In this document: positions 1-33,486 of the stretch, piece by piece | Layout of the letters: each line of letters opens with the position of its first letter | How positions within the stretch are numbered: the stretch's first letter is position 1 | Source: Octopus bimaculoides | Lineage: Eukaryota | DNA: 33,590 nucleotides | Assembly: GCF_001194135.2 (NCBI RefSeq) | Contig: NC_068985.1 | Location: forward strand, 65,597,460-65,631,049 | Direction: 5' to 3' | Notes under the pieces: generated by a model | What the model was told of the DNA's origin: nothing | Seen by the model: the letters and a program-made list of their open reading frames with translations, nothing else | Database searches by the model: none | Translations under genes and position numbers: made by a program

Positions 1-237
1 GGATAACACAACGAGTTGTACAATTTAATTATTACATTTATTATTCAATTACATACAAAGAACGCACTCACCCAATGTTCGTTATGAATAAACAAGAATC
101 ATGTCCGCCATATATATCAATGACATTTTACTACGACAGTCACACAAGACAACAACAATGAAACAATGAACTCAGACGAACCACGCTGACACACGGAACG
201 TCAGACGAATAACATATCCAACAGTCCATATAACACC

Positions 238-1496
238 AATATTCCGTAAGTTGTTTATATTTATTAATCTACATCATTAACTGGTTGTTATATTATTACT
301 GTGATTTCCATTCAGAACAGGTTTGAGCATTTTAATAAACTGTTTCTCTTTTATCTTTCTTCCAACCTCACTTGTTTCATGTAGTTTGTGGAAAGGAAAA
401 ATTAGAAACATTTTCTGACCACATGACTATATGTTCGCTCAATGGAATTTGGAGAACATTGGTGTTCCAGATTTGTTGTCTGTGGACTCAGGAGTGTTCC
501 AATAATGCATTCCCTGTCTCATCTATATACAATTCCTTGCAATTCAGGCATTTAATACAGTAGATCAAATTTCTGCTTTTGCAGTTCTTTGCATTTGTGA
601 AAATCTGTCCATTTTTTGTTCTAATGTATCTACCCATATATATCAATGACATTTTACTACGACAGTCACACATCTGGTATCATTACACTTGGATACTGTG
701 AATGTTTTACCCTGTTTGTTCATGTTGAATTTTGCCTTTGCAATAGTTTCTTTAGGTTATGTGGTTGCCTTTTCTTTAAGATAAGTGTTTGATTAGTTAT
801 TATGTTTTTTTAATTTTTCACTTTGTTTTATCATCATCATCATCGTCGTCATTTAATGTCCGCTTTCCATGCTGGCATGGGTTGGACAGTTTGACTGAAC
901 GAAAAGGCTACACCAGGCTCAATCTTTATGGTTGGCAAAATTTGTTTTGATGATGTTAAAAATGTTTTGGTAATGTGGATTGTGTGTTACTAAAAATGGT
1001 ATTGTGTTTTTTTCGTGTTGCTCTAAATTGTTCTATAGGTATCTCTTTTGCTTGTTGTATGCTATTTTCTATAAGCAAGAGAGGGTAATTTTGCTTGAGC
1101 AGAAATCCTTTAAGTTCTGTAAGTCGTGTGTTTCTGGTATTTGGATCATCAATTATAGTACAAATTTTCCTGGCCAGACAGTACTGGATGTTGTGTTTTG
1201 TGTGTGTTTGGTGGCATAATTTGAAATTTAGGTACTGGTGTGTATCTGTGCTTTTGTAATAACTATCAGTTGTGATTGTGGTGTTGTTTTAATTACCATT
1301 ATGTCAAGAAATGGTAATTGTGTGTTGCTCATTTCTCTTGTGAATTTAAGACTAGAGTGTAGATAATTGAGGAGGGTGCTGAATTCTTCCAGATTTTCTA
1401 GGGATTTGGTCCAAATTAAGAAACAATCATCGAGGTATCTTTTCCATGTGTCCTCTATATGTCTTTTAAAGGTCATGTCATAGTTCTCTTCAAAGG
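238..1496 (-). mobile_element. Penelope-like element (lineage A), 5'-truncated, decayed RT C-half plus GIY-YIG endonuclease
   Basis: Minus-strand RYLDDCFLIW...LPFLDIMV (ORF 1228-1530), then YYKSTDTHQYLNF..HQTHTKHNI (PLE thumb) and CKSRNLIYCIKCLNCKELYIDETG (GIY-YIG, ORF 488-673). Stops, frameshifts and a SINE-tail insert at 835-931. Confidence 0.9.
835..931 (-). mobile_element. Truncated RTE/SINE 3' tail inserted in the left PLE arm
   Basis: (CAT)n-..GTCCGCTTTCCATGCTGGCATGGGTTGGAC is the reverse complement of the tail at 28455-28520. It is absent from the right arm. Confidence 0.8.
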
Positions 1497-2250
1497 AACA
1501 CAATACCATTTCTAGTAACACACAATCCACATCACCTTTTCACATTATCAAACAAATTTGCCAATGATAAAACAAAGTGAAAAATTAAAAAACATAACTA
1601 ATCAAACACTTATCTTAAAGAAAAGGCAACCACATAACCTAAAGAAACTATTGCAAAGGCAAAATTCAACATGAACAAACAGGGTAAAACATTCACAATA
1701 TCAAAGTGTAATGATACCAGTTGTGGAACATGTCAATGCATGCATATGGGTAAATGCATTAGAACAAAAAATGGACAGATTTTCACAAATGCAAAATTGA
1801 ACTGCAAAAGCAGAAATTTGATATACTGTATTAAATGCCTGAATTGCAAGGAATTATATATAGGCGAGACAGGGAATGAATTATTAGAACACCAATGTTT
1901 GCCAAATTCCATTGAGTGAACATATAGAGACATGTGGTCAGGAAATGTTTCTAATTTTTCCTTTCTAAAAACTACATGAGACAAGTGAGGTTGGAAGAAA
2001 GATAAAAGAAAAACGGTTTATTAAAATGGAAATAACAGCAATAATATAACAACCAGTTAATGATGTGGATTAATAAATTTAAACATTTTACAGAATATTT
2101 AAGAGCATGTGGATTGATCAAAATGGTATTCTGAAAATTCAGCTGGTTGGAGCATTTTGAGAGGTGCTAAAGTTGTCAAGAACTCAACTCTCAGATAAAC
2201 AAATTTGAAAACTGATGAGTACACTATGTATGAAAGCACAAATTTTGTTA
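1497..2250 (+). mobile_element. Inverted second copy of the PLE-A 3' half (inverted pseudo-LTR with GIY-YIG)
   Basis: 1497-2099 is the reverse complement of about 238-1008. ORF 1671-1919 has the Cys-rich linker CNDTSCGTC plus NLIYCIKC..C...YIGETG. Extension beyond 2099 is inferred from the hammerhead-like motif at 2212. Confidence 0.85.
2200..2247 (+). ncRNA. Degenerate minimal type I hammerhead ribozyme motif (PLE pseudo-LTR)
   Basis: CTGATGA (2212-2218), stem II GTAC/GTAT with loop ACTAT, GAAA (2232-2235), then GCAC. Stem III and the cleavage site are decayed. Confidence 0.45.
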
Positions 2251-2290
2251 AAATACCATGATAAAAAACTTGAAAACCAGACTATGCTTT

Positions 2291-2678
2291 GACGTGGTAA
2301 GTAGCTTGCTTACCAACCACATGGTCCCGGGTTCTGTCCCACTGCGTGGCATCTTGGGCAAGTGTCTTCTACTATAGCCTCGGGCTGACCAATGCCTTGT
2401 GAGTGGATTTGGTAGACGGAAACTGAAAGAAGCCTGTCGTATATATGTATATATATATGTATGTGTGTATGTGTTTGTATGTCTGTGTTTGTCCCCCCAA
2501 CATCGCTTGACAACCGATACTGGTGTGTTTATGTCCCCGTAACTTAGCGGTTCGGCAAAAGAGACCGATAGAATAAGTACTAGGCTTCCAAAGAATAAGT
2601 CCTGGGGTCGATTTGCTCGACTAAAGGTGGTGCTCCAGCATGGTCACAGTCAAAAGACTGAAACAAGTAAAAGAGTAA
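2291..2678 (+). mobile_element. tRNA-derived SINE, near full length
   Basis: GTGGTAAG A-box-like and GGGTTCTGTCCC B-box-like head, internal (TA/TG) microsatellite, 3' GGTGGTGCTCCAGCATGG...GAAACAAGTAAAAGAG. The same tail occurs inverted at 33487-33590. Confidence 0.85.
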
Positions 2679-2681
2679 CTG

Positions 2682-2762
<81 letters not shown>

Positions 2763-2776
2763 CACACACACACACA
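2682..2776. repeat. Compound microsatellite (CTAT)n-(TA)n-(CA)n
   Basis: Directly visible at the SINE 3' end. Confidence 0.95.
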
Positions 2777-3190
2777 AAATATAAACACTTTTTATTACAT
2801 CATATTCATTATAAATTATTTTAAACATCTTGTATATTACAACACTCTGCCTATACATCATATATATACAGTATGGTGTATTCATAAAAAATCATTATTA
2901 GTGATGGAAGCAGTATTATCAGTGAAACCTCACTATCACAACATATGGGATATTAGTGTCTTTTCAGTCACTGATGTCGCAGTAAGCCAACAGGCTTTTT
3001 AAAAATAATCATTAGTGGCAGACGTTGTATGAAAACCAAAGGCAATCTTTATTTTCAACCTAAGATGGATGTCTTATCAGAACACTAAATACTGTGGTAT
3101 TCACCTTCAGAAGTCCTCTCAGACATATAGTGCATAAAAGTACAGGCATATATTGTAGCAGATGAGATTCTTCTGGAATGGGTGCCAAAA

Positions 3191-3230
3191 CAGCCAGATC
3201 ACATGATTTCAGTGTTACTGCACTTCTTCA
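3191..3230 (-). ncRNA. Type I hammerhead ribozyme motif, 5'-truncated at the inversion junction
   Basis: Minus strand reads TGAAGA-AGTG-CAGTAA-CACT-GAAA-TCATGTGA-TC. C3 and the 5' strand of stem I are lost at 3230/3231. Confidence 0.65.
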
Positions 3231-3301
3231 TTGCAACAGCAGTGACTGAAAAAACACTGATATTCAATTATATTATGGCAGCGGGATTTAGCTGGTGTGT
3301 T

Positions 3302-3359
3302 ACTGGACGCTACTGAAGAAGTGAAGTACACTGAAATTATGTGATCTGACAGTTCCAGC
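3302..3359 (+). ncRNA. Type I hammerhead ribozyme motif, core intact
   Basis: CTGAAGA 3313-3319; stem II AGTG/CACT with loop AAGTA; GAAA 3333-3336; stem III TTATGTGA; TC cleavage site 3345-3346; distal stem I CTGGA/TCCAG. Confidence 0.75.
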
Positions 3360-3639
3360 ACCTATACCTGGTATTTCTTATCTGATATGATATATGACTG
3401 TGCTTTTATGCACCATGCATCTATATGAGAGGACTTCTCAAAGTGAATACCACAGTATTTGGCATTGTAATAGGGCATCCACATTAAGTTAGATATAAAG
3501 ATTGCCTTTGATTGCTAATACTACTTCCATCACTTATATATATATTTTTTAATAAGCCTGCTGATTATTTGCAACATCAACAGCTGAAAAGACACTGATA
3601 TCCTATATAGCGTGATAGTGAAATTTGGCTGGTATGCGA

Positions 3640-3705
3640 TCACTGGATGCCTATCACTGAAGAAGTGCAGCACACTGAAATCACATGATGTAGTAGTTCC
3701 AGTGA
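3640..3705 (+). ncRNA. Type I hammerhead ribozyme motif with inactivating G at position 17
   Basis: TCACTGGA/TCCAGTGA 8-bp distal stem I; CTGAAGA 3657-3663; AGTG-CAGCA-CACT; GAAA 3677-3680; TCACATGA; TG in place of TC. Confidence 0.7.
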
Positions 3706-4955
3706 CCTTAACAGATGATTCTCATCTATGATATATGTCTGTAGTTTTATATACCATTTGTCTGTATGAGAGGACATCTTAAGGCTAATACTGCAGTATT
3801 CAGCATTCTAACAAGACATCCACACTAAGTTGAATATAAAAATTGCCTGATTAATGTGTATATTTTTTTATTGCATTCCTTGAATGAAAATCGTCTATGT
3901 CAGTCAATGTGTGTGTGCTTGCATGTTTGTCTATTTGTGTTTATTTATAAATTCAGTATCATCTTTAGCAAATTCAAATCCTAGATTAACATTTTAATTT
4001 TACTGAGATACTATATAAATATTATAGTGGTAGTGTAATGAACTGATTGTTATGCACTTACTATAAGGAATGACAAACAAAAATTTTATAAGGATAGAAT
4101 AGTGAAAAAGATAATATCCTAACGAAATGCTGTTCTAACAGCTTTCTAATCAGATTACTACTGAGAAAGGCTTGTGATTTTGTTTTAGAAACAAGGTGAA
4201 GTGGAATAGGATAAACTTTAAGTAAAAATATAGAGATATTTATCTATCAATGACTGTTGTGTACCTGAACTAGAACCAGTATTTACCTCTATAGAAGAGG
4301 AATTAGAAAAATATACTGAAATAAGGGAAGATAAAATAAACTGGAAATCATTCTTGATCTGTGAGGTGTTTTTCTTATTTCAGCATGATAATTCCAAGTT
4401 CTCAAGAATGTAGCATTCATACATATTACATCAGATTAGAGTGAAATCATGGATGGTTAAGTCAATTGGTTATGAAACAACCAGTTAAGGGATAAGTTGT
4501 TCATATCCTGTCCACGGCACTGCTCTGTTTCTTTAAGGTACACTACTCTTAAATGGCTCTGCCTGACTGTAAAATGCTACAAAGTAGAAACACTTCACTA
4601 ATGCAAACAGTAAAATTGAGTTGTTTCATTAGCTTCCAGTACCAAGTTTAACTTCTGTGAGAGCTTTGCCATGAGGTTCATACTCTAGCTCTTATAATAG
4701 TCTGCATAGTGATGACTAATGTCTATTCACATGAAAATTCACCACATGCAGACACTCATCACCATGGATATCTTACTTAAGTATGAGGGGAGTTCCATAG
4801 TGAATTTGGATTACATGTCTAATTTTGTGATACATAACAATATTTTTGGTTTTTACAACATAACTTTGATGTGAAAGAACACTTGCACTCGCTTAATCAT
4901 CAAGTCATTCATTTCTCTTTATTTTCTCTCATTTAATCTCTTCTCTGTTTTGCAG

Positions 4956-5133
4956 ATTAAATACTGATATTGCTTTTGCTAAAAACCATAAATTAAAGTC
5001 ACTTTTAGTATTGAGTGGCATCTCAAATTTAGAGGACATTCAGGAAGCTGAAAAGAATCCTTCTGATGAAAACCCTTACCCAGATTATTACTTACCTTCA
5101 CTAGCTGAGTTTTCTCAATTGTTACCCAATTAG
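4956..5133 (+). CDS. PGP: Last coding exon of a HAD-IIA phosphatase (phosphoglycolate/glycerol-3-phosphate/pyridoxal phosphatase-like)
   Basis: Polypyrimidine tract plus TTGCAG acceptor (ends 4955), phase 2. Reads (R)LNTDIAFAKNHKLKSLLVLSGISNLEDIQEAEKNPSDENPYPDYYLPSLAEFSQLLPN*. This matches the GDRLxTDI motif IV, LVLSG and PDYY C-terminus of PGP/PDXP. The orthologue (PGP vs PDXP) is not resolvable. Confidence 0.85.
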
Positions 5134-5515
5134 TTTGCTATCTGAAACACATCAGCAGTGCAAATAATTAAAATATGTTAATAAGACAAAGCTAATGATT
5201 GTAGTTCTGTTTATTATAAACCTTCGTGGAAAATGAAGTTGGTATATTTTAAATTAAACTAGAAACATATCCAGCTTCATAAAATATAGCTAACTCTGCA
5301 GAACTAATTCTTCATTTAATATGTTCTGCCTTGTTCTTTGAACTTAGAACTTCTCTAAAATAATTATTAAATTGTTAGTATGTTGTATACAATCTCTTCA
5401 TGAAGTCTGCTTTGATATATGATTTGTTATTTAAATTTCAAGAAATTGGAATTAAAAGATCCACAAATTCTGTTCAGACTAGTTTCCTTATTATTTAAGT
5501 ATGAATGGATGAATC

Positions 5516-5521
5516 AATAAA
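5516..5521 (+). terminator. Candidate polyadenylation signal of the phosphatase gene
   Basis: AATAAA about 380 bp after the stop codon. The region is AT-rich, so a chance match is possible. Confidence 0.3.
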
Positions 5522-6930
5522 AAGGTCTTCTACATCAGAATACCAAGAAAATAATATCTTTGCATGAAACAATCTCTAAAACCTTGAAATAATCAAACAA
5601 CATTGATTAATTACAAAATATCTATGAAGTAACTTAAATCTGCAAGAAATAGTTGTCAAATCTCTCTCAAATCATGTCCTATCATCTAAAATACAGAAAG
5701 GGCACATTGTACAATATAAGTCTAGATACTCATAAAAAGTCAGGATGATTATGGCCAGAATGTCTTTTATCATAAGTCTGTTCAATATAGATTATCTGGA
5801 TTTAAACAAGCTCTCATAAATATGTGATATAGAAGCAACAACAATAAGGAAGACAACAAAAATGAGGTATTATTATCTCCCTTCCTGATGTTACATATTC
5901 TGCATAAATTACATTAAAAAAAATCCATCGCACTCTAAAATAACATGCGCAACATTCATATAGCAATAATTCAGGAACCATAGAAAGTTTTAACTAAAAA
6001 CAGAAAAGGTTAAACAGACCTTATCCAATGGTAGAGCACATCATGAACCCAGAAGATAGACTCCACAAGTGACATTCATAAATTAATAGAAAGTAACACT
6101 ACACTTGAAATGTGGGTATTCAAAATATAACCAGTAACAGGAAGCACACTAATAGAATAAACATGTACATATAACCACTTAGTTCACTATGTGTCCCACA
6201 AGGTTATACACACAAACTACATTTGCAATACTTCAACATTCTCCCAGAAAACATAATTGGATGTATACCTGGTTTTCAAATAGTACAGATAATAAAACAA
6301 CATTGCACTAAAAAATCACTTTAAACGATGAATAACCTACATCAACATATATATACCTCTTAAAACCAGCAATAACAATTCTTCCCCAGACATCATCTAT
6401 TTCTAATTTCTTAACTTACTCCTAGCTACCTACAAGTTATCACAATACAGTTGTATATCAGAAAAGTGGAATGGGTTTCAACAAGTAACAGAGTGAAAGT
6501 TTTCAGAATTCAATAATACCACAGACACCAACAAAGATACTGCAGTACATACTTTGAACAAAATAATTACAGAGCCATTCAAAAGAACTGTATATCAAGG
6601 CAGCTTAAGAATACAACCCAATTTATGAATCAGAAATAGCCAACCTCATAAAAACGTAGTACAAACTCTAACACAATATACCATCATCATTCATTTCTTT
6701 TATATCCATTTTTTCATGCTTGCATAGATTTGCCAAACATTGTTTAAGGCATTGAATTTATAGTTGGAAGCCCTTCCTAATGCTAACCCTCACCTGGTTT
6801 TCTAGTATGAGATCTCTTATTCCGCATAAAACTCTGAAAGTATGAAGTGACCAAGATAACTTGTTGACAAGAACTGACAACACTGCCATCCACACTTTAG
6901 TACAAGTGATCACAAATGTAAACACATTCA

Positions 6931-7090
6931 CACACACCAATCTTTTAATAGTTTCTAGCCGTCAAATCCATTCTCAAAGCTTTGGTTGGCCCTTCTCTAT
7001 TGTAGATGTTTGCCTAAGATCATGCTCTATAGGACTAAACCTGAAACCATGTGGTTGAGAAGAAACTTGTTGACCTCTCAGTCATGCCTA
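6931..7090 (-). mobile_element. SINE 5' half, same family as 2291-2678, more diverged
   Basis: Reverse complement reads ..TCAACCACATGGTTTCAGGTTTAGTCC..CCAACCAAAGCTTTGAGAATGGATTTGACGG..GAAACT followed by (TG)n. Confidence 0.75.
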
Positions 7091-7411
7091 CACTTGTAGC
7101 TGGGCATCATGCTCAGCAGAAATAAAACTCAGCATGAATGAACAAAGAAATAGCAAAGATCATAAACAAATTACATTTGTATTTACCATAAACCATAAAA
7201 CAAATGGCTAATCATTAGAGTAATTAGTATCATCTTCATCAACAATAACTGCATAACATTTGATCTCAAAATAAGAACCTCAAATAACATACTCATTTTG
7301 CAACAACAAGCAAACCATTATCAATCATTTCTTGAAAAAAATCAGCCATCAAAATCCATACAAAGAAAACACTACACAAAATGAAAATTACACACCTTCT
7401 ACCCAGACCAT

Positions 7412-7586
7412 GATTTCCATCCCTCAGATTTCCATCCCTCAGATTTCCATCCCTCAGATTTCCATCCCTCAGATTTCCATCCCTCAGATTTCCATCCCTC
7501 AGATTTCCATCCCTCAGATTTCCATCCCTCAGATTTCCATCCCTCAGATTTCCATCCCTCAGATTTCCATCCCTCAGATTTCCATC
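7412..7586. repeat. Perfect 15-bp minisatellite (GATTTCCATCCCTCA) x 11.7
   Basis: Units start every 15 bp from 7412 to 7577 with no mismatches. Confidence 0.97.
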
Positions 7587-7865
7587 ATTTACAAAACAAG
7601 AAGGGGATATTTAAAAGCTCAAAATCTCAGGGCCAAACAAAACTTTAAACTTACAACTGAAATCTCTATGACCTGAAGGAATTGCTGCTCTCAGCCACTT
7701 CTACAAACAGTTAAATCCCAAGACTCTGGAAGCTGGAGCAAAATCAACATATATTTCTATAAACTGGCAAAAACCTGGTTGTAGTAACATGTATCAATAT
7801 AAATCCATTTTATCCTCAAAAATTGGGATTTCGCATTTAACCAAATTATATTATATGGATGGTCG

Positions 7866-8790
7866 GAGTTGTGACTTTTCACATGAACATTCAAAACAAT
7901 TTTTATCACACAATTGGTTTCATGTTTTAAGTGAAGAATTCGAACAAAATCCAAAAGATAGTCAGAAGACTGAAAAACACTTGCCTAAGAAAATCCATCA
8001 CACTAGAGATAGATTTATCTAAGCTAAAACTTTCACTGGACCATTTCTCTATCTAAGAGCTTGGACTGAGTTTCTACCCAAGCACTAAGACTTTCGACAA
8101 AAATAAACTAGCTCAAGGGTTATTTCAGTTTGTCCACTATCACAAACTGAAGGAATGTGTTTTTGAAAAACATGATAATGAGGAATCAAAAAACCCTATG
8201 TTTATTGAAAACGATGATCATCAAATTTGCCATTGTTGGACTGAAATGATTTTCAGTTGTTATCCAGATAAAGTTTGGGATGGTCATTCACAAGAACTCT
8301 GGAATTTCTTCAATCTTGTCAGACAGGCATTAGGGAAAGCTTTAAAACAAGTAGAAAGAAGTCCTGGAATAACTTCACAAATTCTCAGCATTACACATTC
8401 TGTTGTTACTAAAATGGCTGATAAGGGAGGTGCTACTGTAATTATGGACAAGAGTAAGTATATTTTCAGCTTGTGAAGAAGTTTTAAGTGACAAAACTTC
8501 ATATGAAGAATTACCTATCGATCCAATACTCAATTACAGAAAGGAACTTGACAAAATAATTCTGGAAACGGAGGAAAACAATTTCATAAATAAGACTGCT
8601 CCTCCACAGCAAGACACTTGTTTATGTCACACTCTAATCTTTCATCATCTGACACAAGATCACTTCACTCTCCTCTCAAAGGATCTTTGTGTTGCCAGTT
8701 ACCTGGTGACCCTGCTAGTGCTGGTGCCATGTAAAAAGCATCCAGCCCACAGGATTTTACACTCAGAACAAAGAACACCTGTATTTTATG
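7866..8790 (+). mobile_element. PLE lineage B, N-terminal fragment (paralogue of 19706-20525), interrupted by a 153-bp insert
   Basis: Aligns by eye with 19706-20525, with GLSFYP..FDKNKL and MADKGGATVIMDKSKY motifs. Homology resumes at 8751 (AGGATTTTAC..AAGAACACCTGTATTTTATG). Confidence 0.85.
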
Positions 8791-8925
8791 ATCTTATTTT
8801 ATCAACCCCAAAAGAATGAAAAGCAAAGTTGACCCCAGCAAAATTTGAACTCAGAACATAAAGATGGACAAAATGCCACTAAACATTTTGCTCAGCATGC
8901 TAACGGTTCTGCCCACTTGCCACCT
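8791..8925 (-). mobile_element. tRNA-derived SINE 5' part (family of 22395-22884)
   Basis: Shares GAATTTGAACTCAG (B-box on the minus strand) and ATGAAA(G/A)GCAAAG with the two copies near 22.5 kb. Confidence 0.75.
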
Positions 8926-9069
8926 TCAAATCAATTAATAATAATCCCTATTGAATGCCTCATTATAGTACTGAGAATGTTACCTAAAGATAATTTCATT
9001 AGTTGATAGATTAGAAATTCTAGTGGAGACACTTTTACTATGAAATCATATTTCTAGGATGGACCTCTG

Positions 9070-9745
9070 TACCTTCAGGATATGCCCCAGCACTTGCCAC
9101 TATGTATCTCTCTCTTCCTTTACTCTACCATGCCAAAAGTATTCTGATCCCTGTTCCTTGTGAGTATGCCCCAGCACTTCACCACCACCTCCCTTTTGCA
9201 CTCTTACTGCCTCCCACTCTCTTTCTCTTGCTCTTCCCTCAGGTTAGATAACCACAGATCTCCTTTACAGTAGCACACCTGTGTTTATCCTCATTCTCTC
9301 TCTCTCTCTCCCTCTGGCTGGGTAACCAGGTACCTCATCCACAGCAAGACACTTGTTTGTGTCACACTTTAATCTTTCATCATCTGACACAAGATTACCT
9401 CCCTCTCCTCTCAAAGGATCTTTGTGTTGCAAGTTACTTGGTGACCCTGCTAGTGCTGGTGCCACATATAAAGCATCCAGCCCACACTGTAAAGTGGTTG
9501 GCATTTGGAAGGCTATCCAGCTCTAAAAACCATGCCAAAACTGACCTTGCCTATGCTTGTGTCGCATAAAAAGCACTCAGTTCACTCTGCTGGTGGTTGG
9601 TGTTAGGAAGGGCATCCAGCCATAAAAACGGTGCTAAAACAGACACAAAAGTCTGGTGTAGTCTCCTGCCTGGCCAGCTCTTGTCAAACTGTTCAATCCA
9701 TGTCAGCATGGAAGACAGGCGTTAAACAATGGTGATGATGATCAT
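9070..9745 (+). mobile_element. 3' end of an RTE-type LINE or RTE-dependent SINE
   Basis: GTGGTTGG..TTAGGAAGGGCATCCAGC..CCATG.CAGCATGGAA..GTTAAACAATG(GAT)n terminus, also seen at 28365-28520. Confidence 0.7.
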
Positions 9746-9769
9746 TGTCATTGGAGTAGCAGTTTACAT

Positions 9770-11350
9770 AATATTGCAGTATGGGTAGAATAACTCAGAG
9801 ATAAGGTCTAAGGTGACATCAAGGAAGTTAGCTCTTAAGATTATTTTCTACTGTAATGCCTAGTCCATAGTTGTTAAAAAATTTTGTTATATCTTCTTTA
9901 TCCGTTTAATACACACTTTACCAGATTTAGGAATTATAAACAATGCATCATCCTGGAACACCACCCAAGAGATCAGAGAAGTTATCATATAAACAGTGCA
10001 ATAAATATATTCATGATTTGCATAGAGTTGCTGAATCCCATTGTAATATTGCAATTATTAGTTCTGTCTTCCCTGGTCTATAATTTTACATCAAACTATA
10101 ACTTGAGCATCTTCTCATCAAGGTTATCCCTCTTTCTTCAGAGGATGATAGTCTTCATTCTAGTTCATGTTAGGTTGTTGGTGCATTTGAAGGTGATTGA
10201 TGAGTCCAATTCAGGCTTTGAAGGATCTTCTGCAAGTAGGGAAAGTTGTTCCTTGGGGGTGATCTGGTCAGGGTTGGAGTTGCATCTCATGCCTCCTTCT
10301 TTGCTTTTCTTCCAGTTTTTCACATTTGTTTGTCTTTAATGAAGTTGTTTCTTCACAGATGATGGATCTCCAGAGGTATTGGTCATTTGCATTTTCTTCC
10401 CAGTTGTTGAAATTGATGTTACATTTTTTTCATGCTGGCCTTCAACAGATCCCTGTATCTCTTCTTTTGTCCTTTTTTCTTCCTTTTTACTACTTTCAGC
10501 TGAGAATAGATCTGTTTTGGTAAACTGTCATTAGACATTTGAACAACATGCCCACTCCATCACAGTTGACTCTTCATGATGTGAGCCTTGGTGCTTGTTG
10601 TTTTGGCTGTTTTCAAGAGGCTGATGTTTTTCCCTCTGTTGTCCCATCTAATGTTCAGGATACTTCAACGATATCTTTGATGAAACTTTTCTTTCTAAAG
10701 TTTTCAGATGATGATGTTGTCCAGGTTTCAGATACGTACATGAGTATTGGAATGATCACTGTTTGTACACAACCATTTTGGTGTCGGTTCTAATGTCACA
10801 GTCTTGAAAGATTCTGTAGTAGAGACAGCCAAAGGCAGTTCCAGCACACTTCAGATGATACTGAATCTCATGGATAGAATAACTGTAGATTTCTCAATAG
10901 TTCAGCATAGGTATTCTCTTTTTTGCTGATCTATAGCTCTGTATTAACATCCACTGGGCAGCTAATTTCCACAACTACACAGTTTCTCTTCTCTATCCCA
11001 AATCTCATTGCTCAGGTCAAGATTTGATGAGAAATGACTCCCAAGATAAGGAAAGTGGTCCATGCTTTCAAGGGTTGTTTCTCTAAGCTTGATCGATGAT
11101 TCTCTTCTGGCTGGGTCATTTGGGGCTGGTTGGTACAAAATATGAGTATCTAGCACTTAAAAGAATATCAATATCCCTATGTGTTAAAAGATAATTTTTC
11201 ATTGCAAAAATTAGTGCCTTACTTGATAATACTGGAAATGTACTAGGGTAATAACTATCAATATTGAACTGTATGAAACTGTACCTACATATGTGTTGAA
11301 TATACTCAAATGAATCAATCATCTCAGAAATGTGCAATCATAGATAAAAA
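9770..11350 (-). mobile_element. PLE lineage C RT remnant split by an RTE insertion (may extend to about 11850)
   Basis: FIQFNIDSYYPS..LSSKALIFA..DIDILLSAR (ORF 11116-11337). Continues below 10130 as NITMGFSNS..FQDDAL..NLKxxNFLDVTLDL..FYPY, a YRDDGL-type PLE RT. Confidence 0.7.
10135..11157 (-). mobile_element. 5'-truncated RTE-clade LINE (3' end of ORF2)
   Basis: Minus strand: LYQPAP..ESMDHFPYLGSH..SNEI..AGTAFG..YVSETWT..FHQR..SILNIRW..SQL*WSGHVVQM..PKQI..QKKRYRDLLKASMKKC, plus a terminal C2H2-like CRRSF..IGLINH. Confidence 0.85.
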
Positions 11351-11352
11351 TG

Positions 11353-11731
11353 TGTATCATAAGACGCCTAGAACTGAAGGATACACTCCTTGGCAGGAAT
11401 TAGCCAGTACCTCTAATCGATAATGGAATACAATAAATAAAGAAATTCAATATCCAGGAACTAAGTTAAACAAAACAAAGAAATAAGTCAGAATCAAGGG
11501 TCTTACCAGACACTTCTGCCTACAATTACCAAAACATTGAGACTTACATTGTCATATTCCAAAACATATCAATACTGAAAAAGGACCTCAGGTTGAATCA
11601 AATTCTCCAAAACAACCAATCCTTCAGACAACCCAAATCAATGAAAAAATTACCAATGCAGGTCAAACTTCACACAATAGCAACAGTAAAAAAATTAGTG
11701 TATCCTTCAGTTCTAGGAGTCTCATGTTACA
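11353..11731. mobile_element. Non-autonomous TIR element (MITE) with TGT...ACA ends, ~34-bp TIRs and 4-bp TSD; Ginger-like
   Basis: TGTATCATAAGACGCCTAGAACTGAAGGATACAC (11353-11386) vs the reverse complement of 11698-11731, 3 mismatches. AATG lies on both sides (11349-11352, 11732-11735). Confidence 0.8.
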
Positions 11732-12534
11732 AATGTTTGCATTGGATATTATTCAGCAAACCATTTGGATAAAGTTTTAATTTTGCTGAAGGATCCAAGA
11801 TCCAATACAAATGAAGACAACTCTTCACAATGGAAAATAAGATTACCTAAGTATATGAAAACCTAATTTATGCAATTACATGCTCAGAATGTAAAGAAAA
11901 TTATACAAGACAAATGGCAGACTCCTTATGAATATGCCAGACTTCAGAATGCAAATTAAACTTTGGGAATACAGACAAATAGGACTCCATAAATATATAG
12001 GACACATATGCAGTTAAGAAACATCCAAACTTTATAATTTTTCCTTTATATCAATTTAGTGATTACATAACTCCATAGCAATGCATCAATGTATCGTCAA
12101 AGAAGGAACTTTCATAATCAAATTTGAACTACATTTAAATACTTATGACAGAGAAAGGGATACAATGTCTTTGCTAAGGTTTCCATAAGTACTACCACTT
12201 GTAGTTAGGCTCACAACTGTTACACCCTGCCACTGTTACTGTTGTCCATATATGCTGCTTCTTTCCTGGACAGCTGCTCCTGCAACAACTGCTTCTACTA
12301 CCACCCAGCAACAATGAGAAGGATGTGATTTTTCGATAGGAAAACATGTACACTTACAGAACTTTTATCATGAAAGATTAATTTAATTCAGTTTAATTTC
12401 AATTTACTTTCAGTTTTACTTTAGTATAATTAAATCATGTTTTTAAAGTGATTCCAACTGGTAACATTTTTAGCTATGATGAATTTCAAAGCATTCTATT
12501 CTTTTTCCTTGTGAGTGTGTGTGTGTGTGTGTGA

Positions 12535-13212
12535 TTATTCAGTTTTATTTCAAGATTTCTTGCCAATAAAGAGCTGGTTTCAAACCTTGATCCAAGGCTC
12601 CTTCATTAAAATCTCAACATCAACAGGGTATTTTTGTATGTATGTATATGTGCAGATTTGTATGTTTTGTTTTATGCATGTATTTTCATATATATAGTTA
12701 CATATCTAGGCATGCTCATATGTATATTTAAATAATAAACTTCTGGAAAGTTTTACAGACTTTTACAGTTCCAGTGATGGCTTGAATCTGTAGTCTTCAA
12801 ATCAGCTTTCTCCTTTCTGGTTTTGAGAAGCTTAGTTTCTAAATATTGGTATTTAGGTAGTGTGTTACATTTCCTAGTCTCCAATAATTACCTGAATATA
12901 TATAATCTGGATAGAATAACTGCAGATTTCTCAATAGTTCAGCAGTATTCTCTTTTTTGTTAATCTTTAGCTTTATATTAACATCCACTGGGAAGCTGAT
13001 TTCCACAACTACACAGTTTCTCTTCTCTCTCCCAAATCATTATATCAGCTCTATTGTGTTTACATTTTATTGAGGTTTTCACTGGAACATTTCACCAGTA
13101 CTCCTTTTTAGTATGAGTGGCTATGGCTTCCACCCTGTTGTGGGTTATTATTTCTTTGTCTTTGAGGTTATCCTTTTGATGGATCTTGTTATACAGTGTC
13201 CTACCTACAACA
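12535..13212 (-). mobile_element. 3' fragment of an RLE-type (R2/R4/NeSL-like) LINE, copy 1
   Basis: Minus strand: HDVVGRTLYNKIH..WEREEKLCVVEISFPVDVN..ELLRNLQLFY..TGTVK, a restriction-like endonuclease region. The 3' UTR has (CATA)n and ends TTGAAATAAAACTG. Confidence 0.75.
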
Positions 13213-13221
13213 TCATGTATG

Positions 13222-14075
13222 TATGCATGTCATTATACAGTTTTATTTCAAGATTTCTTGCCAATAGAGAAAGAGCCAGTTTTTAACCTAGATCCAAGGC
13301 TCCTTCATTGGAATTTCAACATCAACAGGGTATTTCTGTATGTATGCATGTATGTATGTATGTATGCATGTATGTAAGTATGTTATGTATGTATGTATGT
13401 ACGTATATGTGCAGATTTGTATGTTTTGTTTTATGTATGTATTCTCATGCATATACTTGCATGTCTAGACATGCTCATATATCCTTAAAGTTTTACAGAT
13501 TTTTGCAGTCCCAGTAATGGTTTGGACCTGTAGTCTTTGAATCAGCTTTCTCCTCTCTGGTTTTGAGAAGCCTAATTTCTCAAGATTGGTATTTAGACAG
13601 TGTGTTAGATATCACAGTGCCCCAATAATTACAGGTATAAACCTGAACTTGTAATCTGGATAGAGTAGCTGTAAATTTCTCAATAGTTCCACATAGGTAT
13701 TATACAGTGTCCTAGCTACAGAATCGTGTCTCATTGGTAGATAATACTGTGATGATATTTTTGGATAACTGCTTATGATGTGGGTGATATCTTCGTTATT
13801 AACTCCACAGAGTCTGCATTGGTTATCATATTTTGCTGCCTTTCCTGCATCATTGTCCCTCCTATGCCTCAGGTATTTGGTTGATATTTCTTGTTCCTGA
13901 ATTGCAAATGCATACCCTTCAAAGTGGGAGTTAGTAATCTGGTTGTTGGTCTATGATAGACTGCTTTGATGATCAATGTTACTATCGTCCCAAAGCTTTC
14001 TACTAACATAACCATGCATGGTCTTCTGCTGATATACGCTCATCCTTTCATCTGTGGTAGAGTTGTGTGACTTCT
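13222..14075 (-). mobile_element. 3' fragment of the same RLE-type LINE, copy 2, internally deleted
   Basis: Direct paralogue of 12535-12930. FEGYAFAIQEQEISTKYL and the CRLCGVNNEDITHIISS zinc knuckle plus RHD at 13720-13920. Confidence 0.8.
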
Positions 14076-14249
14076 TTAGGCATGTATTTAAGGTTATCAG
14101 ATAAAGAATAACATGTTCGAATGATGATAGGTTAAAAGCAAGAACAACTAATGTGACATGTCTATTATCAAATGATCATGGAAACCTTCTTTTCAGGTGC
14201 TGAATAACATCTTTCCTTCTCATGTTTCCTCCCACATCCCTTTTCCAGT

Positions 14250-16910
14250 TTTTAGAGTTGGCTCTGTCACTGTAGGCACATTGAAAGGTAGGTCTAGCAA
14301 GATTGTTGAGATGCTTGAACAGAGGTGTGTTAATGTATGCTGCATCCAAGAGGTAAGGTGAAGAGGAACTTCAGCCAGGTTCCTCACAAGCAAGGCACAT
14401 AGGTATAAAATAAATATTCTGGGAAGGCAACAGTGATGGAGTAGGTGGTGTGGGCATACTTCTTACAGAGAAATGGGTAGATAAGGTCATAGAGGTAGTC
14501 AGAGTGTGCGATAGAGTGCTTAAGTTCAGGCTAGTCTTGCAAACTAGTACAGCTACAATTATCTCTGCCTATACCCCACAAGCAGGCCTACCAAATGAAC
14601 AGAAGGACCACTTTCATGATATTCTGCAGGCTACCTCAATGACGAGTGACAATGATCTCATCTTTGTGGCTGGGGATTTCAATGGCCATGTCGGAGGGCA
14701 GCCTGGTATCTTCCATGGTGTACATGGGGGCCATGGAATTGACTCCCAAAACAAAGAGAGAACAAGGCTACTGGAGTTCTGTGATGCAAATAAGCTATTG
14801 ATCTGCAACACCAACTTCAGGAAGCCAACCAGCCACCTGATAACCTATCAATCCGGTGACTATGCTAGTCAGATTGATTACATTCTCACCAGACAGTGGG
14901 ATGCATGGTTGCTCTTAAATGCAAAAACCCTCCTTAGTGAAGAATGTACCCCTCCCCCCGTATAGACTAGTCATTAGTGACTTTAGACTCCAGGCCAGAA
15001 GGATACTGAAAAGCAGACCAATCTGGAAAAGAAGGATTTGGAAGCTTAAAGACCCTTGATATGGTCAGAGATTTAGGTTAGGAACATCCTAATTGAGAAA
15101 TTTGGTGAGTGGGAGGAGGAGCTACTGACTTGTGACATAGAGGGCAAGTGGAAATTCCTGCGGGACAGTTTGTTGAGTGCCACAGATCAAATCTGTGGCT
15201 AGTGCAAAGTCCCTTCCCGACCTAGGGTAACATAGTGGTAGACAAGGCCATTAGAGCAAAGAAACTGGTCTGGAAGAGAGGGGGTAGCAGGGAACTGTAT
15301 CAGATAGCAAGAAGAGAAGCTAAGAGACAGATATATCTAGCCATGGGTGAAGCAGAAAAGAAGAAGTTTGCCTATGTTCAGCAACATGCGGACCAAAGAA
15401 CTGAAGTATTTCAGATTGCAAGACAGTGTGATGTCATAGAAGCAAAATGTGTCCACATGGATGATGGTGCACTTGCATTTAATGATTCTGCAAAGAAAGG
15501 GGCTTGGAGATACCATTATGAAAGACTACTGAATATGGAGAATGAATGAGAGGAGGCGAGACTGCTAAATGTTGACCCAATTGAGGGACCAGCTACCCGA
15601 ATCGACAGTACCCTGGTAGATAAAGCAATTAAGGATATGAAGGCAGGGAAAGCACCTGGCTCATTAGGAATCACTGCTGAGATGCTTAAAATATCTGGTC
15701 ATGTGGGTTATGCTCTAGTCATCCTTTTTGTAAATGAAGGAGTCGTACCCAATGACTGGTGTAGCAGCATCATAGTCAGCTGCTACAAAGGTAAAGGTGA
15801 TACCTCAGATAGAAATAATTACAGAGGTATCAAATTGTTGGATCAGCTGATGAAAGTTACAGAGAGAGTCATAGTCCAACTAATTAGGGAGAGAGTTAGT
15901 TAGATGAGATGCAGTTTGGTTTTCTGGCAGGTAGAAGCACCACTGATGCTATATTTCTGGTAGGGCAACTGCAGGAAAAATACATAGCCAAAGATAAACC
16001 TCTGTACTTGGCTTTTGTTGACTTGGAGAAAGCTTTTGACGAGGTTTCCCAATCCCTTATCTGGTTGTCAATGTGGAAACTAGGGATGGATGAGTGGTTA
16101 GAGCTGTACAAGCTATGTACAGAGACACTACCAGTAAGGTGAGGGTTGGCAATGAGTACAGCGAAGAATTCAGGGTACACATAGGGATTCACCAAGGATC
16201 AGTCCTCAGCCCCCTCTTGTTCATCATAGTCCTCAAGGCAACAACAAGAATTTAAGACAGGATGCCCCTGGGAGCTCCTCTATCCTGATGACCTTGCTCT
16301 TATTGCTGAATCACTACCAGAACTAGAGAAGAAGTTTCAGATATGGAAGCAAGATCTAGAATCAAAGGGTCTTTGAGTTCACTTAGCAAAACCAAAGTCT
16401 TAGTAAGTAGAAAGGCAGACAAATCACAAATCCCTGCTTGATCTGTAGAAAAGGCATAGGTAGAAACTCCATAAGATGCACCCAGTGTAAGCTTTGGACA
16501 CGTAAAAGGTACAGCAATATCAGAGGAAGGCTAACAGGGAAAATACCTTTTGCATGTAGAAGATGCACAAGTACATTATATGCTGAAAATGTGCAGAAAA
16601 TAGACTCCATCAACTGCTAGGAGAGCAAGCTAGAGGTAGTAGATAGATTCCGTTATCTAGGTGACCAAGTTACTAGTGGAGGTAGATGCTCCTAGAGCAT
16701 AGCTGTGAGAATAAGATTAGGCTGGGCAAAGTTCAGAGAGCTCCTACCTCTGCTGGCAATAAAGGGCCTATCTCTCAGAGTGAAAGGCAGATTGTATGAT
16801 GCCTGTGTGCAAACAGCTATGCTACATGGCAGCCAGTATGCTTTGCTGGATGTGCAATGTCAGTGCACATGTTCAACAGAGTGTAAGCATCTTGAGAGAA
16901 AAGTTAGGCT
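14250..16910 (+). mobile_element. RTE-clade LINE ORF2 pseudogene (APE endonuclease, RT, inserted PHD-like finger), 3'-truncated
   Basis: APE: CCIQEVR, IISAYTPQ, AGDFNGHVG, QIDYIL. RT: YKGKGD..NYRGIKLL, QFGF..GRSTTDAIF, AFVDLEKAFD, HQGSVLSPLLF, YPDDLALIAES. Many stops and frameshifts. Confidence 0.92.
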
Positions 16911-16997
16911 TATATTTATTGGAGTATCGTGTTAAGACAGTTGTGTCTACCCTGCTTCGTGAAATCTGTATATCCAATGTATAGAAGGATATAAAAG

Positions 16998-19100
16998 TGG
17001 TGACAAGTTTATTTGAAGCTTATGTTGGACATTAGCATTTTCTTTTGATACAAAATCAAAGAAAAATTAGTTAACATGGTAGACTCATTAGCCTCCATGG
17101 TGCACTTGCAACAGCAACAGTTACAGCAGCAGTTACAACAACAAAAACAACTATACCAACAGTTGTTGGAATTAATGTTGAAGTCCAAAAATACTTCAGG
17201 TTCATTCTTGCCAGACAGCATAGCATTCACAATTGCAGAATTGTTATAATCCAGAAGAAGGTATTACTTTTCTGCATATTTGAAGATATGAAGAAATCTT
17301 CAAAGAGGAGTGCAAAAGTTGTAGAGACAATGAAAAGGTATGACTACTTTAATGAAAATTATCCCCTACCGAACACAAAAATACTGTAACTACATTTTAC
17401 AAAAAAAAAAAAAAAAAACGTGAAATATGCTTCAGTGAAACAATTAAATTGTTATCAAAAATTTTCAGTGTGAGAAGTTCTATGTTCAATATTCACTGGG
17501 AGTGTTGGAATTTAGTAAAAAAAGATGATGAAGATTTCATCACCTATGCCAGAATTGTCAATTGAGAATGTGAAAAATTCAAACTAAATGAATTAACCCT
17601 GGACATGTTCAAATGTCTAATTTTTGCTGAAGGGTTAACTGCAAGCAGAGATACATGCCCAGATATTTACAAAATTAGAACAGGACCAGAATTTGACTCT
17701 GCAGGCAGTGGTAGAGGAATGTCAGAGAATCATTAATCTGTGACATGACACAAATGAAATCAAAGAAAAGGATTACTCTCACATACATGCTTGTTGACCT
17801 GTAATGACTAAAGAAAAAGAAAAATGATGATGAAGACCCAATCCATGTTATGGGTGTGGAGGTTTACATTTTAAAAATAACTGTCTGTTTTAAAATTTTA
17901 AATGTTTTAACTGTCAAAAAACAGATATAAAAGCTCATATTGCAGAGTAAAATAAGGTTAAATGAAAAAAATTCTGGAAAGGAATTTCATATTGGTCACC
18001 AAGAGATTTTGAGAATGAAATCACTAATGAGAAGTTATGTTTATTGGCCCACAATGATGAAATCCTGCAGAGGTTGTGCCCTTGCAGCCAAGTCACCACA
18101 GGTAAAATCCCAACTGTGGCCTAAAACCAACAGTCTGTGGACCAGACTTCATACAGATTTTGCTGGACCAGTAAACGGCATGTATTGCCTGATTGTAGTA
18201 GATACTTATATATACTAAGTGGCCAGAAATTTGTAGATGTCGGAAACCAATCTCTACGGTAACAATAGAATTTCTTCATGAACTCATTGCAAGATATGGT
18301 GTGCTGGACACCATAGTATCCAATAATGCTACGCAGTTTACAGTGAATGAGTTTTAAAATTTTTGCAAAATGTACGCAATTGATCACCTCTCTACTCCGC
18401 CATATCACCCAAGATCAAATGGGTAAGCAGAACAGTTTGTGAATACATTTAAAAGAGCATTAAAGAAACCAAGAAACAAGCAAGTTGATGACATAGCATT
18501 GACACAATTCTTGAGGGTTTATAGGATAACACCAAATCCAAACATTTGTTCAGGCAAGTCACCTGCGGAACTAATGTTTGCTTGAAAAACAGAGTCAATT
18601 TTTCACAAGCTGTTATCAAGAAGAAAAACAAATAGGGAAAACACTAAAACAAAGTATTCTAATATAACTGACAAGGTGTTTATCAAAATATATAAAAATG
18701 GAAGAGAAGCTTGGGAAGACGAAGTAGTAACAAAAACAAATAGGCAAAATGACGTATATGATAAGAGGCAAAAAATGGGAACAAAAAAGACATTTAAACC
18801 AGTTAAAAAATGGATATATGGAAAAATGAAAAGTGATATCTATGACACCTTTGATGTTCAACACCACACAAGAAGTTGAACTTAGGCATAGCAGCAGAGG
18901 AAACAAACAGAACAGTTGGAAATAGTGCCTAAAAAGAAGAAATATTAAACTTTCCTGTGAAGTAAATCTCAAAGGGGGAGATGTGGCAAGAGTCATTGAC
19001 ATCCCTGTGGGACTGGAAGAATGGACTAACCAAACTTTTATAAAGAATAGCATATTGGTTGAGAGGGTGAAGTTGTAGGCTGTTGAGAGTTCGTGGAAGT
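16998..19100 (+). mobile_element. Internally deleted Gypsy/Ty3 element: gag plus integrase, with no PR/RT/RNase H
   Basis: PBS-like TGGTGAC at 16998. Poly-Q gag with CYGCGGLH..C knuckle (about 17070-17940). Integrase H..H..MKSLMRSYVYWP..C..C, HTDFAGP, PYHPRSNG (17985-18590). PPT AAAGGGGGAGA at 18971-18981, then TG at 18982. Confidence 0.8.
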
Positions 19101-30654: not shown

Positions 30655-31435
30655 ACCCTCAAGTAAGTGCTGGAGATGTCATGGCCTCAGTGCATGTTTA
30701 CACATCGCCAGCCATGGCCTGCCCAGTCCACCATGCTATGGATGTTGACAGAGATAGATTGCCTGACCATTGGAATGTGTCCCTTTCACAAGAACTGAAA
30801 GATTAAATGCTCTGGTACAGTAAGATGGGAACTGGGACAAAACACAATGCTCAGGTGATAGTAGTTGATGGACGCGATGTATACGTTTGCCATCTCTGCC
30901 TGAACCTTAAGGGATAATTTCCTCTCAATCCATTTCATGGTTCGTTATTAAATATATATTTACTAGTTGGTACTATGTGAATTAATGTTAACATTTATAT
31001 TGTATGTAGTTTATGCTAAAAAAAATTTTTCTGAAGTCATAGTCTATATTTATTTTAAATCGTTTCTTTGTAGAGAGAAAACTTTTATTCTCTCCCAACC
31101 CCCAATTCGAGTTTGAGCGGGAATATCCAAAGAGTACCTCTTTCTCTGTTCATTCGGATAAGCTCTAGAAATTGTTGCACGCGCGCACACACAAACACAA
31201 AAATTCTCCAGACATTTAGCTGTTATTTTTAGCATATCGAGTTTCGTGGTGAGGTCTTCACATGCCGTGTTCATTTAGCTGTTTCACTATAAATCTACGC
31301 ATGCGGAAACGGGCAAAACAGCCGTTCATTTTCACTGTTAGACAGTGAGATGGGGTGATCAATTTTGGAGATTTTCATAAAAAATTTGAAATGAAACTTT
31401 GTCCTCCCCCCGCATATCTTAATCTCCGTATCTTC

Positions 31436-32177
31436 NNNNNNNNNNNNNNNNNNNNNNNNNNNNNNNNNNNNNNNNNNNNNNNNNNNNNNNNNNNNNNNNN
31501 NNNNNNNNNNNNNNNNNNNNNNNNNNNNNNNNNNNNNNNNNNNNNNNNNNNNNNNNNNNNNNNNNNNNNNNNNNNNNNNNNNNNNNNNNNNNNNNNNNNN
31601 NNNNNNNNNNNNNNNNNNNNNNNNNNNNNNNNNNNNNNNNNNNNNNNNNNNNNNNNNNNNNNNNNNNNNNNNNNNNNNNNNNNNNNNNNNNNNNNNNNNN
31701 NNNNNNNNNNNNNNNNNNNNNNNNNNNNNNNNNNNNNNNNNNNNNNNNNNNNNNNNNNNNNNNNNNNNNNNNNNNNNNNNNNNNNNNNNNNNNNNNNNNN
31801 NNNNNNNNNNNNNNNNNNNNNNNNNNNNNNNNNNNNNNNNNNNNNNNNNNNNNNNNNNNNNNNNNNNNNNNNNNNNNNNNNNNNNNNNNNNNNNNNNNNN
31901 NNNNNNNNNNNNNNNNNNNNNNNNNNNNNNNNNNNNNNNNNNNNNNNNNNNNNNNNNNNNNNNNNNNNNNNNNNNNNNNNNNNNNNNNNNNNNNNNNNNN
32001 NNNNNNNNNNNNNNNNNNNNNNNNNNNNNNNNNNNNNNNNNNNNNNNNNNNNNNNNNNNNNNNNNNNNNNNNNNNNNNNNNNNNNNNNNNNNNNNNNNNN
32101 NNNNNNNNNNNNNNNNNNNNNNNNNNNNNNNNNNNNNNNNNNNNNNNNNNNNNNNNNNNNNNNNNNNNNNNNNNNNN
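31436..32177. other. Assembly gap (N run)
   Basis: Continuous n characters. Confidence 1.
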
Positions 32178-33326: not shown

Positions 33327-33481
33327 CACCCGCACGATTTTCACTAGGGTGTTAGGGTTAGAGTTTTAGGGTCATGGTTAGGGGTACGGTTAGGGGGTTA
33401 GGGAATTCCGTCCCTAACCGTAACCGTAACCCTAAACCTAACCCTGACCCTAAAACACCCTAGTGAAAAATCGTGCAGGTG
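33327..33481. mobile_element. Palindromic MITE with TTAA flanks and internal converging telomere-like repeats
   Basis: CACCCGCACGATTTTCACTAGGGTGTT vs AACACCCTAGTGAAAAATCGTGCAGGTG. TTAA at 33323-33326 and 33482-33485. Degenerate TTAGGG then CCCTAA around a central GGAATTCC. Confidence 0.8.
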
Positions 33482-33486
33482 TTAAT

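Follow-up and report, generated by a model that had tools for sequence, protein, structure and literature searches.

Does the octopus genome carry self-cleaving repeats of the hammerhead type, and are any of them still able to act? The question is raised by a short repeat array in a 33,590-nt stretch of Octopus bimaculoides DNA (NCBI RefSeq assembly GCF_001194135.2, contig NC_068985.1, forward-strand positions 65,597,460 to 65,631,049), which was analyzed at its full length and is called the window below. A preliminary description made from the sequence alone had likened the array to a retrozyme. In animal genomes, classical hammerheads are found mainly in retrozymes, whose small circles can account for a visible part of total RNA. 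Experimental demonstrations come from a coral, a mussel, and salamanders. No description of cephalopod hammerhead repeats or retrozymes was found in the literature searched. The reading favored here, with a probability of about 0.7, is that the array goes back to an old and since decayed insertion of a retrozyme without long terminal repeats (non-LTR retrozyme), carrying a once-functional type I hammerhead at a single locus.

The array contains three copies of one non-coding unit of 338-344 nt within positions 2886-3850, one of them inverted (U1) and followed by 1.8 direct copies (U2 and U3). When a repeat finder was used and each unit was compared with the window by blastn, identity was 73-75% in every pair. 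The start-to-start spacings of the direct copies were 338, 341, and 344 nt, which indicates that the proposed array of ~344-bp repeats is real. The inverted arms were located by the same two tools at 3034-3128/3419-3513 and 3127-3215/3328-3416. The U1-U2 head-to-head junction falls between 3230 and 3231, within a 6-bp palindrome TTGCAA (3231-3236). The right edge at 3850 agrees with the preliminary description, and the left edge was moved from 2893 to 2886. The minus strand of 2795-2885 aligned with the hammerhead region of U3 at a score of 30, a value reached by 2.3% of shuffles, and on this alignment the inverted arm may extend, heavily decayed, to about 2795. No further copies of the unit were found by blastn in the rest of the 33.6-kb window. 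The array is the only ~340-nt repeat of the window and takes up 3% of its length. Tandem Repeats Finder did not call it, which is expected because there are 1.8 direct copies at 74% identity.

The core and helix III strings that had been quoted for the three units were all found to be exact. The core string reads CTGAAGA-AGTG-AAGTA-CACT-GAAA in U2 (3313-3336, plus strand), CTGAAGA-AGTG-CAGCA-CACT-GAAA in U3 (3657-3680, plus strand), and ATGAAGA-AGTG-CAGTAA-CACT-GAAA in U1 (3231 down to 3207, minus strand). The eleven invariant positions, namely C3, U4, G5, A6, G8, and A9, then G12, A13, and A14, and the A15.1-U16.1 pair, all follow one another in type I order in U2 (3313-3345) and in U3 (3657-3689). 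The catalytic center of U2 is intact and fully satisfies the CUGANGA/GAAAY/RUH definition (PMC7229834), with a helix II of 4 bp and a helix III of 3 bp including one G.U pair; its helix I was broken by a 4-nt deletion that took most of the proximal 5' strand. U1 is cut in the hammerhead core and begins exactly at U4, so that neither C3 nor the helix I 5' strand remains, and its ATC triplet places C17 at 3197.

All three helices are present in U3. On the 5' side, helix I is built from the distal strand TCACTGGA (3640-3647), the internal-loop bases TGC, and the proximal strand CTATCA (3651-3656). The 3' side after position 17 reads TAGTAG, T, TCCAGTGA (3691-3705). Five of the six proximal pairs can form, followed by a 3/1-nt internal loop and an 8-bp distal helix of TCACTGGA with TCCAGTGA. 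Between these strands lie C3 to A9 (CTGAAGA, 3657-3663), helix II with the strands AGTG and CACT closing the loop CAGCA, and the GAAA at 3677-3680, which represents G12-A14 plus A15.1. Helix III is formed by A-T-C and G-A-T across ACAT, giving 3 bp closed by ACAU, with U16.1 at 3689. The cleavage triplet is AUC in U1 and U2 and AUG in U3; by the majority of copies, the ancestral position 17 is C. The plus-strand cleavage positions of U2 and U3 are 344 nt apart.

The helix III segments that follow GAAA are ATCATGTGAT in U1, ATTATGTGAT in U2, and ATCACATGAT in U3. At one dinucleotide of this segment, U1 and U2 have TG and U3 has CA. A TG/CA split at the same dinucleotide is the standard mark of an ancestral CpG. 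The proposed origin of all three variants by CpG decay from one perfect palindrome, ATCACGTGAT, is sound because this split marks a former CpG. The array is strongly depleted of CpG, with an observed/expected ratio of 0.19, compared with 0.27 in the window. The ancestral ATCACGTGAT monomer would form 3 bp closed by an ACGU tetraloop.

The reconstruction of helix I is less fixed. The combined ribozyme of the preliminary description pairs CTATCA with TGATAG; CTATCA is present in U3, and TGATAG occurs in no copy, so that ribozyme is a composite. The 3' strands of the copies read TGACAG, TGGCTG, and TAGTAG, with TGGCAG as the majority reading, and U3 is the only copy to show CTATCA as a complete 5' strand. 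TGGCAG with a hypothetical CTGCCA and TGATAG with CTATCA require six substitutions each, and both give a perfect 6-bp helix. The choice between the two reconstructions is made by the pairing assumption, not by the data.

Features of the Octopus bimaculoides window discussed in the text (coordinates are window positions)
Feature	Position	Strand	Description
Unit U1	2886-3230	-	Inverted, about one unit long; 74% identity to U2/U3 over 320 nt
Unit U2	3231-3568	+	First direct copy; repeat finder, blastn, alignment
Unit U3	3569-3850	+	Second direct copy; cut short at 3850, which corresponds to U2 position ~3507
Tentative decayed continuation of the inverted arm to the next hammerhead region	2795-2885	-	Local alignment score 30
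Hammerhead relic 1 (U1)	3183-3230	-	(A)UGAAGA / AGUG-CAGUAA-CACU / GAAA / UCAUGUGA / UC / UGGCUG
Hammerhead relic 2 (U2)	3300-3359	+	CUGAAGA 3313-3319, GAAAU 3333-3337, AUC with C17 at 3346
Hammerhead relic 3 (U3)	3640-3705	+	All three helices present; sole match to the three-helix descriptor in the window
Penelope-like element (PLE) relic, minus arm	238-1545	-	YLDD reverse transcriptase (RT) motif within 1228-1530, GIY-YIG 488-673; frame broken several times
PLE relic, 3' fragment	1564-2099	+	GIY-YIG 1671-1919; head-to-head with the minus arm, 92-96% identical to it
Octopus short interspersed nuclear element (SINE) and tail	2294-2780	+	SINE 2294-2678; 88-92% identity to Octopus vulgaris and O. 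sinensis copies
Weak PLE/RT-like relics	11359-11928 and 20614-21275	+	27-36% identity to the open reading frame (ORF) of PLE locus L054 (tblastn)

The chance expectation of such a motif was estimated with descriptors of increasing stringency. By chance, ~0.2 occurrences per window would be expected of a CTGANGA core followed by a helix II with 4 bp or more and by GAAA; core and helix II alone therefore prove little. When a helix III with 3 bp or more was also required, the expectation fell to 0.013 per window (16 matches in 40 Mb, both strands). When a U3-like helix I was included as well, U3 was the only match in the window, and 0 matches were found on both strands of 40 Mb of composition-matched random sequence; this three-helix descriptor was written after inspection of U3 and is somewhat tailored to it.

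A covariance model, R1, was built from four retrozyme hammerheads that cleave in vitro: coral Amil224, mussel Mg353, and axolotl Ax353 and Ax330. Their sequences were taken from the supplement of PMC7229834 and aligned, the textbook structure was imposed, and the window was searched with filters off. The three best matches on both strands were the three predicted sites, namely 3651-3696 in U3 (16.4 bits, E~0.01), 3307-3353 in U2 (15.4 bits, E~0.02), and 3198-3237 on the minus strand in U1 (12.2 bits, E~0.18). The fourth-best match in the window had 10.7 bits. For calibration, R1 gave 16.3 bits for the hammerhead of the PLE locus L054 and 27.2 bits for an Octopus sinensis site at locus L052 (10702-10763). 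Across the window, L052, and L054 sites, 93% of the pair cells were standard, compared with 64% in shuffles and 17-43% with slid partners; the underlying alignment was fitted by the model and is biased toward it. The 8-bp distal helix of U3 lies outside R1. By the three-helix descriptor and R1, the type I hammerhead architecture proposed for the repeats is unlikely to be a product of chance.

Conservation was compared across the 209 columns shared by all three copies, of which 66% are invariant. The catalytic strands and the adjoining helix II and helix III bases have 19 of 20 columns invariant, compared with 62% elsewhere (Fisher p=0.0017, post hoc, on three copies). The 33-column hammerhead block has 27 invariant columns, a tied maximum over windows of equal size. 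This indicates that the core is more conserved than the rest of the unit, a point on which the earlier proposal had been made to depend. The array has a GC content of 36%. Every frame is closed, the longest open stretch being 61 aa, and a six-frame translation gave no protein homologues at E<=10 among 5.8 billion proteins. A profile of the open antisense frame matched only two unrelated repeat proteins.

Metazoan non-LTR retrozymes are described as type I hammerheads in tandem units of 150-450 bp with GC below 45%, without long terminal repeats, primer-binding site, polypurine tract, or ORF, and co-occurring with PLEs (PMC7229834). The octopus array agrees with this description in having short tandem units that each carry a type I hammerhead motif, in low GC, in the absence of long terminal repeats, primer-binding site, polypurine tract, and coding capacity, and in co-occurrence with PLEs. 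PLE relics lie in the window, and Octopus vulgaris and O. sinensis have annotated proteins of the PLE type. Its unit of 338-344 nt is like the 350-390-bp repeats of the Mytilus galloprovincialis retrozyme (PMC7229834). A short AT-rich non-coding tandem unit, the CUGANGA/GAAAY/RUH center, and PLE co-occurrence are common to the array and the retrozymes of mussel and coral (Acropora millepora). Beyond the core there is no sequence similarity. The array also differs from these retrozymes in having A10.1-U11.1 for G-C and A at position 7, and in consisting of 2.8 decayed units at one locus, one of them inverted, with an RNA that is not unusually self-paired.

The emphasis placed earlier on the palindromic helix III was apt. 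All four validated ribozymes have one: ACAGTACTGT in coral and ACGCGCGT in mussel, ACACGTGT in Ax353, and ACATGT, to be compared with the inferred octopus ATCACGTGAT. The axolotl retrozymes Ax353 and Ax330 and amphibian satellite 2 are similar to the array in unit length (~330-350 nt) as well as in the palindrome, and ACACGTGT of Ax353 shares its CACGTG center with the octopus palindrome. The amphibian families number 10^4-10^5 copies. Action as a dimer, which the preliminary description had read from the palindrome, is not implied by it. Invertebrate retrozymes cleave efficiently as single motifs and amphibian ones are dimer-dependent (PMC7229834); the amphibian helix III of 1-2 bp needs the dimer, whereas that of the octopus monomer would have 3 bp. 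The 3 bp plus tetraloop of the coral ribozyme, which cleaves efficiently alone, is identical in architecture to the inferred octopus helix III.

Hammerheads within PLEs themselves were reportedly described by Cervera and de la Pena in 2014 and by Luense et al. in 2017. A further example was seen in this study at L054 (ENA ERZ26168041), where positions 1-18835 hold five tandem, apparently intact PLEs with a period of 3716 nt. L054 is the closest full-length relative of the PLE relic in the window, at about 50% identity. Each of its PLEs is followed, 86 nt past the ORF stop, by the hammerhead CUCC-CUGAAGA-UUCC..GGAU-GAAA-ACGU-UA-GGAG. It has type I topology, a CUGAAGA core with A7, and the PLE-type insertion geometry, as in the array. 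Unlike the array, PLE ribozymes are minimal, with a helix I of 4 bp without a loop and a helix III of 1 bp, and they occur once per 3-4-kb coding element.

The geometry of the array is also that of PLE insertions, which are partial tandems with an inverted 5'-truncated copy (PMC8557442); in the array, the 1.8 direct copies are preceded by an inverted one that is truncated at its 5' end. Because of this fit, integration by PLE enzymes is a reasonable inference. An active ancestor would have given multimeric transcripts that cut themselves after the C of AUC. Its ribozyme would have had a 6-bp helix I, beyond which an internal loop led to a distal helix of 7-8 bp, a helix II of AGUG/CACU, and a helix III of AUC-ACGU-GAU. 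Cleavage would have freed ~344-nt monomers with 5'-OH and 2',3'-cyclic phosphate ends, which host tRNA ligase could circularize. The reverse transcriptase and endonuclease of a PLE would have copied the monomers back into DNA, leaving a partial tandem and an inverted 5'-truncated copy. The 10-nt palindrome of helix III would let neighboring ribozymes pair, and the monomer fold of 3 bp plus a tetraloop may suffice. Judged from the damage in each copy, the ribozymes of this locus are now dead, and the array is probably an inactive fossil copy. The ~344-nt circular RNAs predicted for it are unlikely to arise from the present locus because both flanking ribozymes are damaged.

The nearest candidate for a mobilizing element was the PLE relic that lies 0.8-2.6 kb upstream of the array, whose closest relatives are PLE proteins of 49-62% identity, including Octopus vulgaris and O. 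sinensis entries. The preliminary description had noted that the inversion of the array copies the geometry of this element. A head-to-head PLE relic is indeed present upstream, but the array was probably not moved with it. The units are ~74% identical and the PLE arms 92-96%, that is, a divergence of ~26% between units against 4-8% between arms, so the array looks much older than the adjoining PLE, and this PLE was rejected as an unlikely mobilizer. The SINE tail, (TATC)n(TA)n(CA)n at 2685-2780, stands between PLE and array. This microsatellite was considered as an insertion target and rejected, being a SINE tail 100 nt from the array.

Several observations weigh against a retrozyme origin. 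Each copy has one disabling lesion, and no single intact hammerhead exists. In U3, position 17 is G (3690), which is disallowed at a hammerhead cleavage site. A strict descriptor (perfect helices, H17) gave 0 matches in the window because every copy carries a disabling defect. The ends of the array are offset from the cleavage site. The 10.1-11.1 pair is A-U in place of the usual G-C; this objection is softened because Ax353 has a non-canonical U.U there and the O. sinensis ribozyme at L052 is also A-U. Retrozyme RNAs are described as highly self-paired, in monomeric linear and circular form, and the present unit RNAs were no more stable than shuffles (z = +0.3, -1.0), which could be due to decay. 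For the hammerhead region, the z-values of -1.6 (U3), -1.95 (the composite of the preliminary description), and near 0 (U1, U2) are uninformative, and the minimum-energy fold favors an alternative pairing of ATCAC in helix I with GTGAT in helix III. If the three copies come from one insertion event, selection cannot account for the conserved core, which may then be a matter of luck.

Further copies of the family were also not found in the octopus, PLE, metagenome, and protein sequences covered. The unit is absent from three octopus loci reached via PLE protein searches (L050-L052, 58 kb) and from three other PLE loci (60 kb). A scan of metagenome contigs with CTGAAGAAGTG-N4-7-CACTGAAA gave 49 matches; each lies by chance in the coding DNA of bacteria, and none is related. 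A second family locus was sought through spurious ORFs, with no result in two very large protein libraries. The 49 metagenome matches were reused as a negative control for R1. Two of ~42 unique chance core matches in bacterial DNA scored 17.4-17.6 bits, and in 270 kb a score of 14-16 bits was reached by two unrelated bacterial sites. R1 scores of 15-16 bits are suggestive, not proof, because these control sites score similarly, and the E-values of ~0.01-0.02 per window look roughly honest. The Rfam check suggested earlier was negative as well, since no hammerhead family matched at gathering or at E<=10 on 1.25 kb, nor at E<=10 on an 84-nt slice. This silence is weak evidence because, at gathering, the clean L052 ribozyme and six L054 PLE ribozymes escaped Rfam too; it is likely due to A10.1-U11.1, A7, G17 in U3, and the damaged helix I.

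Three other origins of the array were weighed. The units may be the terminal non-coding region (pseudo-LTR) of an autonomous PLE that was otherwise deleted, with the hammerhead being the PLE's own. The terminal repeats of PLEs carry hammerheads, and the L054 ribozyme lies just past the ORF stop; the window is rich in PLE relics, and the tandem and inverted geometry is a hallmark of PLEs. Animal retrozymes are also argued to derive from PLE pseudo-LTRs and are reported to be sister to them, which makes the boundary between the two thin (preprint 10.64898/2026.07.22.740005). This origin is nevertheless unlikely. The units follow each other every 338-344 nt and no trace of an ORF lies between them, while the partial tandems of PLEs repeat the full element (3716 nt in L054). 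The unit has no similarity to any PLE relic of the window or of L050-L055, a comparison that covered a very small number of octopus PLEs. In its 3-bp helix III and in a long helix I interrupted by an internal loop, the hammerhead resembles those of retrozymes and not the minimal L054 form.

A local tandem-plus-inverted duplication of non-functional DNA that held a hammerhead-like string by chance, and was never a ribozyme, would agree with the ~0.2 core and helix II matches expected per window, with the silent Rfam, with the overlap between R1 scores and some chance sites, and with a single known locus where no copy is intact and the consensus ribozyme needs copy-picking. The motif falls, however, in the only ~340-nt repeat of the window; the three-helix arrangement had 0 matches in 80 Mb-strands of random sequence, and the core is the most conserved block of the unit. 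Helix III rebuilds to a perfect palindrome of the type common to the four validated retrozyme ribozymes, and unit length, GC, and geometry all fit the retrozyme description. The R1 and descriptor results, the sole ~340-nt repeat, and the distal helix outside R1 together make a chance origin quite improbable. It is harder still to see the U1/U2 inverted pair as the source of a long hairpin RNA, such as a small-RNA or PIWI-interacting RNA precursor, to which the hammerhead likeness would be irrelevant. The inverted arms of ~330 nt have 75-80% complementarity, and the best Rfam match is a hairpin-type microRNA precursor model over the inversion center (E=0.12); that match scores 21 bits, where gathering requires 150, and is simply a product of the inverted repeat. 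With 20-25% mismatches, the hairpin would be a poor Dicer substrate, and the direct repeat and the conserved core are left unexplained, so this origin was given very little credence.

The value of the dead locus is as a pointer to a family, not as a functional element. It is possible, though doubtful, that octopuses carry their own undescribed lineage of hammerhead elements marked by A10.1-U11.1, as seen in the array and in the O. sinensis ribozyme. If so, still-active members would make abundant circular RNAs of ~340-400 nt in cephalopod tissues. A cephalopod retrozyme family would widen the known host range, its natural A10.1-U11.1 core variant would be an addition for ribozyme biochemistry, and the reliance on PLEs that has been proposed for retrozymes could be tested in a further case.

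The O. sinensis site (L052, VCDQ01011892.1, 10702-10763) is an apparently intact type I hammerhead, ACUACG-CUGAUGA-AGCU[23 nt]AGCU-GAAA-CUGCAG-UA-CGUAG, present in a single copy at L052. It sits in a ~400-bp non-coding block (10512-10920) with (TA)n on both sides. The A10.1-U11.1 pair, a palindromic helix III (ACTGCAGT), and a non-coding block near microsatellites are common to this site and the array, in the same host lineage; beyond the core there is no similarity, and the L052 ribozyme has a helix II with a 23-nt extension and a single unit.

Other observations were made in the window. A second hammerhead-like core, CTGATGA-GTACA-CTA-TGTAT-GAAA, was found at 2212-2250 on the plus strand, ~160 nt beyond the point (~2052) where the plus-arm PLE ORF is inferred to end. 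This core passes the descriptor for core, helix II, and helix III; its helix I is unconvincing and R1 gave 8.6 bits. By analogy with L054, where the ribozyme lies 86 nt past the ORF stop, it may be the PLE's own decayed hammerhead. Within the PLE relic (238-2099), a 39-nt segment found at 634-672 is duplicated exactly at 108-146, positions 969-1013 are an inverted copy of 1492-1536, and at about 830-950 there is an unrelated insert that contains a (TCA/TCG)n run.

A relic of a long interspersed nuclear element (LINE) type with an Exo_endo_phos_2 match was found at 14450-16830 on the plus strand, with 78% identity over 1.6 kb to an O. sinensis copy (L051). Positions 31001-32000 have a GC of 16% and overlap a mechanical 277-codon ORF (31355-32188) without a Pfam match. 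At 33412-33453 and 33484-33590, seven CCCTAA telomere-type repeats adjoin a minus-strand SINE fragment of the same octopus SINE family and are possibly its tail. The tail of this family at 2685-2780 is a different one, (TATC)n(TA)n(CA)n. At 7412-7586, the 15-mer GATTTCCATCCCTCA is repeated 11.7 times in perfect tandem, and because the copies are 100% identical, this tandem appears to be very young or homogenized.

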